Below, one piece after another: positions 47,701-50,700 of a DNA stretch of 64,000 bases. A program made the position numbers and the translations under genes. Each line of letters starts with the position of its first letter. Within the stretch, counting starts at the first letter, position 1. Source of the stretch: Saccostrea cucullata (lineage: Eukaryota); assembly GCF_032062105.1 (NCBI RefSeq), contig NW_026941020.1:1-64000 (forward strand), in the 5' to 3' direction. The notes under the pieces were generated by a model. That model made no database searches and had not been told where the DNA came from. It saw nothing but the letters and a program-made list of their open reading frames with translations.

Positions 47701-50700
47701 CTTTTTTGAATAGTCAATGCATAACTCTTTTATTTCATATTTAATCATTTCCCAACGAATTTGCGGATCTGGTTGGTTATTTATATTTTCAGGCATATTT
47801 TCGAAAAAGGTTTTGATAATGTTACAAAATTCAACATCTTGTAAAATTGACGTATTCAATTTCCAAAAACCATTACCTCTTTCATTTTTTGAGAGGGTGC
47901 AGTAAAAAATAAAAGACCTATGGTCACTCATTCTAGTATTTGAAACATCTGGAGGTTTTCTAAGTAATATTTTTTCAACAGGATAACATAAATTCTCGGA
48001 AGTGAATATGTAATCAATTCTGCTTTTAGGCTTATTATTTGAATCACACCATGTTTTCCCTTCTTTTTCAGGATTAATTTTGTCCCATATGTCAATCAAT
48101 CGAAATTTAAATTTTAAATCATTAATTATTTTTGCACATTTACTCTTTGCACTGTGTACTGAATTAAAATCCCCTACAAATATAATGTTTTGTTCATTTA
48201 AACAATATTGAGAAACCCATGAAGCAAGTTTTTTGAAAAATTTACATCTTTCATTTTCTGAATTTGGCGCATATATATTTACTAAAGTTATAATGTTCTG
48301 TTCATACTCAATATTAATTAAAATTCTCCTTCCATCATCTGATTTGTGTATGTTATGAACAATAATTGGTAAACTTTTATGAAATAATACAGATACCCCT
48401 CTACTATGGGAAGAGTTGGAAAAACAATGATAGCTTGAACCTTGCCATCTAGCATTGTAAATATTTTCTCTTTCAGTTATATAATGAGTTTCTTGTAGAA
48501 AAACAATTTTGCAATTAGTATCATTAAGCCAATCATATAAAGTCTGTCTTTTAGAATAATCATTAAGCCCTCGGGCATTTAACGACAACAGCTTTAACGA
48601 TGACATAAATATAAGAGTTCTTTGTGTTCATACATCTTAACTTAAACAGTTACCGTTAACGTTTCCGTTGATCTTTTTTCCTGCTTTTTCTAAGATTTTC
48701 AGCGGCGCAACCAATTATCTCCCCCATCATGTTTTTCCCTGGCCAGGCCGTTGGTGATGTTTTGATTGTTTCTTCATAAGACAGGCCAGTTCCCCAGTAT
48801 AGATCATAAACTGGGTGTCCAAAGAACACAGACGGCTTAAAGGAGAGTAGTTCGTCTCTCATTTTTTCACACTGTTTTACCTTTTCTGCAATGATTTGTT
48901 CCATAACTCCCTTTTCCGTTTCCTTCCATTGATCTGATTTTTGAACAAGATTGCCAATACGTTTTGCTTCCAGGGCAGTCTTAGCGTTACGAATGCGCTC
49001 AGCTGCACCTACATCACCTGATCTTAGTGCCTTCGCTGTTTGAAAGGCTTGTTCTGCCGACCTAAATGACTCTCCAAAGATCTTAATCTCACATGGGAAG
49101 AAATTTGACAATACATTGTTTTCTCCTTGAAAAGTTTCCAAATTTTTGGGTTTTACGGAAATGTAGAAATCGCAATCTTCAGATCCTGGTTTGTGCCCCG
49201 GTTTTTTGCATACTGCGCAGCACGTCTCGTTTTCACAATGGAATTTATTGTGCCCATTTTGCCAGCAATTGGTGCATGTGAGTGCTGGTTTGTCTATATG
49301 CTGGTCTTGATGGTATAGCTTACATTTCAGCCCGGCACAATATACATTTCTGGGTAGGGTTGCGTTGGGTGGTAATGGATCTATGTATAGAAAACGATTT
49401 CCATTTAGAACACTTGTCATTCTTTTTGTTTCAGGATTTCTAATTTTCTCGTAGTACATTTCGGTTTTGGGTGTGACTTTAAGCTTAGACAACATTTCAA
49501 AGACGGCACTATCATCCACCGATAGAGGGAGTCCGCAGATTGTGACTTTTAGAGACTTATCGTCGGGAGCTTCAAGGCCTGTCGAATATGGATTTGAGTC
49601 ATATACCTTGACATGTTGGTTCCCGATATCTAAGCCCTGCAGAAGAATGCCATCCCTTCCCTCTTTAGTATTCAAATAGATCCGCCACAAATCTCTATCT
49701 AATTGGATACACCGAATGGTGTCACCAACTACCTTTGAAGCGCATTGTACAAGCAGAAAATTAGTGACCTTGCCCTCTTTCGAGCCAAGTATTTCACTGT
49801 TCTTTAAATAGACCGGCTTTAAGACCTGTGCCATTGTTCGATGAACTCAATTCACTGATCTCTCACTCGCCGAATTTCGCACAATAAACAGATGAACAGG
49901 ATATACAAAGAACACATAAATCCAATCAAATATTTCACAATTTTTCACAAGAAAATATATCTATGTAGTGTTATGTCCATATAGACCACACAGAAGTACA
50001 AAATATGAAAATAATTCCACAGAACTCGATCAAAAAAGCGGAGCTCGAGAGGTAACGTCCATACCCTGTGAGCCCGTCACGTGATCCTTTTTCGTCTTTC
50101 CTTAGTTAAAATCTCAAGGTGGCATGTCAGATTCGTTTTCCGGCAAAATGTGTCTGTCTGCGGGAACCTCTAAAAATGAAAGTGAAAGTAGGGGAATTTC
50201 ATAGTTCTCACTGGTGCTATAATACACAAAATAATTCGGCTGATCTTCTTGATAAATTACATTTGCCAAGCTTTTTTGGTAGGAAAGATTCTCCTTATCA
50301 ACAAGTGTGAGGCTCAGTTTAGTTCATGTGCACTATTTTTTTTATGCAAGTCTGCAAAATAAGGAACTTGTATTTTTTTCTGCACACATTTCTTCTCCTA
50401 CCGATTCTAAAAATAGTTAGTGGGATGTACCCAAATAAAACTCAAGATATAAAAAATCAAAATTTTGACTTAAGTCTGTTCTCAGTTTATGGTATTGGGG
50501 CCTGGTTTCGTAATTGATGGACATCTAGATTGTCTTAATTCTTTGATTTATTTCCTTTCTGAGTTTTTAAGGTAGTCTGAATAGTGTGCATTCTATCTTA
50601 CAGGTACTTGGGCTGGTTGTGAAGTGTTTGAAAATTATGTGTCAATCCTGGACAGTCCCCCTGACGATGAGGTGAGTTTAAATATCTCAAGTCCTAGAGA

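Follow-up and report, generated by a model that had tools for sequence, protein, structure and literature searches.

Results

A NADAR domain at the end of a LINE RNA-binding protein

The DNA analysed here (the window) is a 64,000-nucleotide stretch of the Saccostrea cucullata genome, positions 1 to 64,000 of contig NW_026941020.1 (assembly GCF_032062105.1). Its reverse strand contains a full-length long interspersed nuclear element (LINE) whose first open reading frame (ORF1) encodes a predicted RNA-binding protein that terminates in a NADAR domain. The anatomy of this element, the identity of the domain and the selection acting on it are, taken jointly, regarded as almost certain.

A fusion of this kind is already known, having been mentioned as an aside for oyster Tx1 LINEs. 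The ORF1s in Repbase of several Crassostrea (Magallana) gigas Tx1 LINE families carry a YbiA-family NADAR domain, which is covered in two sentences and a supplementary alignment, with a proposed role in processing the RNA intermediate (PMC12477816; Genome Biology, 2025). This was the sole paper on a LINE ORF1-NADAR fusion found in a search of the literature, and the possible novelty of the fusion entertained in the initial annotation of the window is thereby removed. The C. gigas families are the same kind of element with the same fusion, but in a different genome, and the paper contains no selection analysis, census, active-site variants or individual insertions. What is new here is the genome census, the selection analysis, the recognition of a His-bearing subclade and the description of individual young insertions. 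Also described in PMC12477816 is an Ectocarpus Gypsy lineage with NADAR at the N terminus of Pol. This, too, is a retrotransposon with a captured YbiA-family NADAR, but it is a long terminal repeat element in which the domain lies in Pol rather than in an RNA-binding protein and is apparently bacterial in origin. The Ectocarpus Gypsy and LINE NADARs look like independent captures.

Domain composition of the ORF1 protein

The C-terminal part of the ORF1 protein (ORF1p) matched Pfam family PF08719 with an E value of 8.2e-23 and a score of 81.9 bits (cut-off 35.1) over profile positions 9-160 of 163, and scored 83.4 bits against TIGR02464 (cut-off 73.7). Sequence matches with E values near 1e-7 were obtained to the two solved NADARs, PDB chains 8BAU (Phytophthora nicotianae NADAR with ADP-ribose) and 2B3W (Escherichia coli YbiA). 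An AlphaFold2 model of ORF1p, computed with 63 homologues as input, had a mean predicted local distance difference test value of 92.4 and displays the YbiA-like helical core fold. The top two Foldseek matches to this model were again 8BAU (E 2e-8, template modelling (TM) score 0.70) and 2B3W (TM-score 0.73), where the TM-scores are normalised by target length. Unlike the window domain, these best structural matches are cellular enzymes that stand alone, and they have Glu at the position equivalent to residue 340 of ORF1p.

The N-terminal half resembled the tandem-RRM proteins Pub1, hnRNP A1 UP1 and NONO at Foldseek E values of ~1e-4, with low TM-scores. In an alignment of 63 ORF1 proteins, the Cys and His columns of the two CCHC zinc knuckles were invariant or nearly so, and matches of the knuckles to nucleocapsid structures in the PDB were weak. 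As modelled, ORF1p is an RNA-binding chaperone (RRM-like plus CCHC) with a genuine C-terminal NADAR domain. The initial annotation, made from the letters of the sequence, had proposed exactly such a domain following two CCHC knuckles, and the profile, sequence and fold matches all bear it out.

In the classification of Khazina and Weichenrieder, type I ORF1 proteins reportedly consist of RRM and CCHC domains, and the ORF1s of CR1-like LINEs are said to bear an esterase or a PHD module. The window protein has the same RRM and CCHC front end with an accessory module added, the module here being NADAR. LINE ORF1 proteins rarely carry enzymes, and most LINEs have no NADAR domain.

The active site and a Glu-to-His replacement

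The residues of 8BAU that contact ADP-ribose or are needed for hydrolysis of guanine-ADP-ribose are E43, K50, W89, D130 and W133 (PMC11543638). These align with E261, K268, W303, D344 and W347 of ORF1p, and G348 is also present, in agreement with the retention of the Glu/Lys pair (i, i+7) and of the Asp of the DxxWG motif noted initially. All 63 aligned ORF1 proteins have K268, and at least 90% of them have E261; W303, D344 and W347 are also conserved across the LINE family. Judged by these residues, the domain is probably catalytic.

The window motif FGHPVYD places His340 where the YbiA subfamily has Glu (E125 of 8BAU), an equivalence taken from the family alignment, the pairwise alignment to 8BAU being ambiguous by one residue (a loop of variable length precedes the Asp). 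The TIGR02464 score exceeds its cut-off despite the loss of this YbiA-type Glu. Related ORF1 NADARs mostly read F-[AV]-E-[ST]-T-[YF]-D, and the window domain and its subclade read [AG]-H-[SP]-V-Y-D; the replacement first noticed in a single copy is therefore general to the whole subclade. Across 246 NADAR domains, column 340 is occupied by Glu in 183 and by His in 26, and Glu is found in 91 of the 122 ORF1-type domains, including most sister LINE families. His340 occurs almost solely on an F257/Q262 background. Given that this background also exists with Glu, the changes H257F and H262Q probably preceded E340H. At least four families of this genome are fixed for His340; their mutual identity is only 54-66% and their synonymous sites are saturated, which argues that the residue is under selection and is not a product of decay. 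By analogy with other NADARs, the replacement probably alters specificity and does not abolish catalysis.

The same position varies in characterised enzymes: it is Asp where the NADAR is linked to DarT1 and His in the NADARs of phages (PMC11543638). Phage T4 AdfN (gp30.3) strips guanine-ADP-ribose from its own phage DNA and defeats DarTG1, a counter-defence role common to AdfN-T4-like NADARs, all of which carry His (PMC11825919). AdfN and the window domain are both mobile-element NADARs that have exchanged the Glu of the last beta strand for His, but AdfN is a stand-alone protein and acts in a bacterial host with a known writer, DarT1. Given that the closest relatives of the window domain are Glu-type LINE NADARs, its His arose independently of the phage His. 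DarG1, the NADAR antitoxin that counteracts DarT1 and hydrolyses ADP-ribosyl-guanine, has the fold and the Glu/Lys pair in common with the window domain (PMC11543638). It differs in belonging to the BC4488 subfamily, in having Asp at the third catalytic position and a basic N-terminal extension for single-stranded DNA, and in the location of its gene next to that of the toxin. The LINE encodes ORF1 and ORF2 only, with no cognate ADP-ribosyltransferase of the kind found in DarTG1.

Selection on the domain and copies within the genome

Ratios of nonsynonymous to synonymous substitution (dN/dS, omega) were obtained from natural copies. For pairs of intact copies with unsaturated dS (0.38-0.43), dN/dS was 0.05-0.11 for the NADAR part, comparable to the values for the RRM part (0.03-0.22) and the knuckle part (0.07-0.11) of the same pairs. 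Within the young family of the window element, omega was mostly 0-0.3. The NADAR domain is under strong purifying selection and is not decaying. Neutral decay of the domain, the outcome that the initial annotation had set against its own proposal, was ruled out by these values.

At least 152 NADAR matches, with 40-100% identity to the window domain, are present in the 1.17-Gb genome. About five-sixths of these are free of internal stops, and the open frames that contain them are roughly 400-500 residues long. At every NADAR locus examined a homologous endonuclease-encoding ORF2 lies downstream, and ORF2 divergence parallels that of ORF1, showing that NADAR and ORF2 were passed on as a unit while many LINE families diverged.

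The family of the window element is itself small, with ~8 copies keeping ORF1 at 97% identity or more. Its 3' ends outnumber its ORF1 regions in the genome, as 5' truncation predicts, and 13 further copies end in AATAAA followed by 9-40 A, representing 12 distinct insertion sites. Two copies (L047 on C11443 and L048 on C23133) have a common 3' flank and are one insertion that appears twice in the assembly, through either duplication or an uncollapsed haplotype. Many classic Tx1 elements insert site-specifically; site-specific insertion of this family was ruled out by the differing flanks of its copies.

Anatomy and insertion of the element

From 5' to 3' the LINE comprises a 5' untranslated region (UTR), ORF1, a 49-nucleotide spacer, ORF2, a 3' UTR and a poly-A tail, with both frames open (Table 1). 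ORF2 contains an apurinic-type endonuclease at residues 7-229 (Exo_endo_phos, E 3.6e-13), a reverse transcriptase at residues 511-760 (RVT_1, E 2.3e-38) and a C-terminal zinc knuckle at residues 1089-1143 (zf-RVT, E 1.5e-6), all as Pfam profile matches, and this combination assigns the element to the L1 superfamily. The L1/Tx1 (L1-superfamily) label given initially is thus upheld by the ORF2 domains; the choice of Tx1 over L1 is a literature inference that depends solely on PMC12477816 having named oyster NADAR-ORF1 elements Tx1, and the element is best described as Tx1-like.

Given the perfect target-site duplication, the AATAAA signal and the run of 27 A, the element is a full-length insertion with both frames open. 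The duplication measures 12-14 bp, its first two A being indistinguishable from the poly-A tail. The hallmarks of target-primed reverse transcription are present in the form of a target-site duplication, a poly-A tail and 5'-truncated copies. The element is a young, apparently intact and recently inserted copy of the L1 superfamily, and the open frames, perfect duplication, poly-A tail and recent mobility reported initially were all seen. Base composition differs within the element (44887-49834), G+C being clearly higher in ORF1 (0.38-0.41) than in ORF2 (0.25-0.30).

Table 1. Positions of the LINE, its parts and the surrounding gene in the window
Feature	Position	Strand	Remarks
LINE, full-length, ~5.5 kb	44596..50093	-	Boundaries set by the duplicated target site and poly-A
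Target-site duplication, 5' copy, AACTAAGGAAAGAC	50094..50107	-	Perfect repeat of the 3' copy
Target-site duplication, 3' copy, AACTAAGGAAAGAC	44582..44595	-	
5' UTR, 259 nt	49835..50093	-	
ORF1, 392 aa	48656..49834	-	Two RRM-like domains, two CCHC knuckles, NADAR
Two RRM-like domains, aa ~8-75 and 95-175	49310..49813	-	AlphaFold2 secondary structure, Foldseek
Zinc knuckles, CX2CX4HX4C (aa 187-200) and CX2CX4HX6C (aa 206-221)	49172..49276	-	
NADAR domain, aa 238-379	48698..49123	-	Pfam, TIGR02464, fold, dN/dS
Codons E261 to K268, catalytic Glu and phosphate-binding Lys pair (i, i+7)	49031..49054	-	Match E43/K50 of 8BAU
Codons H340 to W347	48794..48817	-	His replaces YbiA-type Glu at the end of the last beta strand
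Inter-ORF spacer, 49 nt	48607..48655	-	
ORF2, 1239 aa, open	44887..48606	-	Exo_endo_phos, RVT_1, zf-RVT
3' UTR	44594..44886	-	AATAAA 44634-44639, then 27-nt A run 44594-44620
Deltex-type gene, WWE exons	41711-42088, 42651-43685	+	
Deltex-type gene, RING exon	50730-51041	+	
Deltex-type gene, Deltex C-terminal domain	51765-52013	+	

A Deltex-type E3 ligase gene (41711-52013, forward strand) surrounds the LINE, which is inserted in one of its introns in antisense orientation. The WWE and DTC domains of Deltex proteins deal with ADP-ribose, and the location of the LINE within a gene of this type is probably a coincidence. In RNA libraries, depth over the flanks of the LINE (50113-50300 and 44400-44596) is far above that over the element, reaching 932 in contigs, and many reads have loose ends at 50169. 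Another repeat or an expressed exon beside the insertion may account for this.

Relatives outside this genome

Matches to full ORF1 comprised 78 clusters, themselves defined at 90% identity, the named ones being from Saccostrea, Pinctada and Magallana, and the best match beyond this genome had 80% identity. A Magallana gigas protein fragment with 76% identity to the window NADAR also has His at 340. A HMMER search of 1.8 billion representative proteins gave 6335 hits; the best 150 included 145 newly returned clusters, defined at 50% identity, and 50 of these have the ORF1 front end. Every full-length relative of the front half of ORF1 was found to carry NADAR. All named relatives are from Saccostrea, Pinctada, Magallana, Crassostrea and Haliotis, and the ESM Atlas taxon for the nearest clusters is Mollusca. 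A scan of viral contigs with this single protein gave no relative.

A FastTree phylogeny of the 246 NADAR domains (146 columns) was poorly resolved, and the ORF1-linked label requires 46 changes on it, in part from fragments labelled "short". The window domain falls inside a supported set of 98 rows, 77 of which are ORF1-type. No donor of the NADAR domain, which the initial annotation had suggested seeking with such a phylogeny, could be named from this tree. Common descent with the DarG1/AdfN clade is not indicated, the nearest relatives being Glu-type mollusc LINE NADARs. Phage matches to the window domain by tblastn had at most 33% identity, and of three that were aligned two have Glu and the third Leu at column 340. 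The phage NADAR gene closest to that of the window is in Proteus phage Stubb (MH830339.1 61053-61670), where the genes on either side of it encode the two subunits, A and B, of an NAD-dependent DNA ligase.

Several other architectures were encountered. Giant mollusc proteins (P0090, which is Haliotis rufescens LOC124129589, and P0086, P0093 and P0094) contain 3-7 tandem NADARs, repeating in P0090 with a period of 642 residues. Many of these tandem domains have lost either the catalytic Glu or the catalytic Lys, which suggests non-catalytic arrays. Two metagenome proteins combine NADAR with an esterase: P0146 (L034:48-2048) consists of a PHD finger, NADAR and a GDSL/SGNH esterase, and P0223 of NADAR and an esterase. 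NADAR may thus have entered a second, CR1-type ORF1 with PHD and esterase modules, the contigs of P0146 and P0223 being too short to include ORF2. The PHD-NADAR-esterase architecture was not found in this genome, where only the NADAR part of P0146 has matches. In P0173, P0175 (L035:1284-3605) and P0183, an N-terminal NADAR is fused to a C-terminal TatD-family DNase.

Discussion

Given that the NADAR domain is tethered to a cis-acting RNA chaperone, it may serve as an eraser acting on the RNA, cDNA or target DNA of the element itself. Such a role, argued by analogy, is a serious possibility that falls somewhat short of probable. Here, the domain would work as an N-glycosidase that hydrolyses ADP-ribosyl bases. 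ORF1p would coat the RNA that encodes it and place the enzyme on this RNA and, while target-primed reverse transcription proceeds, on cDNA and target DNA as well; there NADAR would strip ADP-ribose from guanine or cytosine. The template could then still be read even where the host or its resident microbes ADP-ribosylate nucleic acids, and the element would possess a built-in eraser comparable to phage AdfN. Every NADAR subtype tested, including YbiA and a phage enzyme, hydrolyses guanosine-ADP-ribose (PMC11125620); some NADARs also act on cytidine-ADP-ribose and on RNA, and activity has been shown for a NADAR from a sponge (PMC12945103). NADAR is also encoded by invertebrate nidoviruses, among them PONV1 of the Pacific oyster (PMC12377751, PMC11848433). 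Because nidoviruses have no DNA stage, a DNA substrate is no likelier than an RNA one.

Several points tell against an eraser of this kind or weaken the case for it. No guanine- or cytosine-directed writer of the pierisin/Scabin, DarT, enterotoxin or exotoxin type was detected: no match to PF03496, PF01375, PF14487 (DarT) or PF22596 (Scabin-like) was found in the genome when candidate writers were sought with the Scabin-like, DarT, Enterotoxin_a and ADPrib_exo_Tox profiles and not with a CARP-1 sequence. This negative carries little weight, since the profiles gave nothing in the control genomes either and since CARP-1 has diverged further than any other member of its family. Three PF01129 genes of the ADP-ribosyltransferase (ART) family were found, and these resemble the arginine-specific HopU1 and Vis, not pierisin-type enzymes. 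The window NADAR is a bare YbiA-type core that lacks the basic DNA-binding extension of DarT1-linked NADARs, and His at 340 might weaken or redirect catalysis. Evidence of transcription is weak and shows no consistent strand: in three oligo-dT RNA runs, read depth at 97% likeness or more was 0-2 on both strands, with almost none over ORF1; contigs from one metatranscriptome library do cover ORF1 and ORF2 at ~98%, and may be DNA carry-over. The ART-family genes, whose nearest solved relatives are HopU1 and Vis, are single-exon and lie at C12407:352540-368047 (two genes, 15 kb apart) and C9166:165902-166441.

A more specific proposal is that the erasure is a counter-defence. CARP-1-type host transferases, or microbes, would mark guanine or cytosine in retroelement and virus RNA or cDNA, the LINE NADAR would erase the marks, and oyster nidoviruses would do so in parallel. 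This is rather unlikely in our estimate; it is plausible, by analogy, in view of the retained catalytic residues, the AdfN-like exchange of Glu for His, the NADAR of an oyster nidovirus and the occurrence of CARP-1 homologues mainly in Bivalvia (PMC12945103).

On the unlikely side, yet to be weighed alongside the eraser, is a conflict-free role in which NADAR matures or repairs the RNA of the element, for example by clearing ADP-ribose- or NAD-derived groups that arise from RNA-end chemistry. RNA processing is the function proposed for the oyster and Ectocarpus elements (PMC12477816) and, in earlier work, for the NADARs of RNA viruses. It accords with the fusion to an RNA chaperone and with the fact that the bearers of NADAR (nidoviruses, the Gypsy lineage and LINEs) all have a cytoplasmic RNA genome or intermediate, the nidovirus domain being accompanied by macrodomains, an RNA ligase and a 2'-phosphotransferase. 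However, no known step of the LINE cycle requires such chemistry, most LINEs lack NADAR, and the sole nucleic-acid activity demonstrated for NADARs is the removal of base-linked ADP-ribose (PMC11543638, PMC11125620, PMC12945103). The same fusion to RRM and CCHC domains points to action at or near nucleic acid and speaks against a hydrolase that would destroy a nucleotide-derived metabolite or immune signal, such as riboflavin intermediates or an NAD-derived compound. The bare YbiA-type core and the score above the cut-off of TIGR02464, a model of riboflavin-intermediate N-glycosidases, would suit such an enzyme, but no signal of this sort is known in molluscs and E. coli YbiA also hydrolyses guanosine-ADP-ribose in vitro (PMC11125620), making this alternative improbable.

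A domain that binds ADP-ribose or NAD without turnover, and in this way regulates ORF1p or guides the ribonucleoprotein to DNA breaks or to chromatin that is ADP-ribosylated, is no more probable than the small-molecule hydrolase. The loss of the YbiA-type Glu in the subclade of the window element would be explained by it, and non-catalytic NADARs do exist, many domains of the multi-NADAR mollusc proteins being without catalytic residues. Against such a reader stand the retention of E261, K268, D344 and W347, the strict conservation of His340 in the subclade and the catalytic activity of the same His variant in phage AdfN (PMC11825919). That the domain was captured by chance and is functionless for the element is extremely improbable in view of its low omega (0.05-0.11), its persistence in several bivalve genera and in families so diverged that dS is saturated, and the failure to find full-length relatives without NADAR.

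Whichever of these activities is exerted, strong selection has maintained NADAR and its conserved active site in a LINE clade that is large, old and mobile to this day; the conserved E261, K268, H340 and D344 are ready targets for mutation. An oyster RNA virus has the same domain, and DNA ADP-ribosyltransferases of the CARP-1 type occur chiefly in bivalves. If the domain serves RNA maturation, it would represent a new step in LINE biology. If instead the proposed counter-defence is true, the LINE enzyme would be the first equivalent of phage AdfN known from a eukaryote, the subclade with His in place of Glu would record a change of specificity in an arms race, and ADP-ribosylation of bases would be an animal defence against retroelements.

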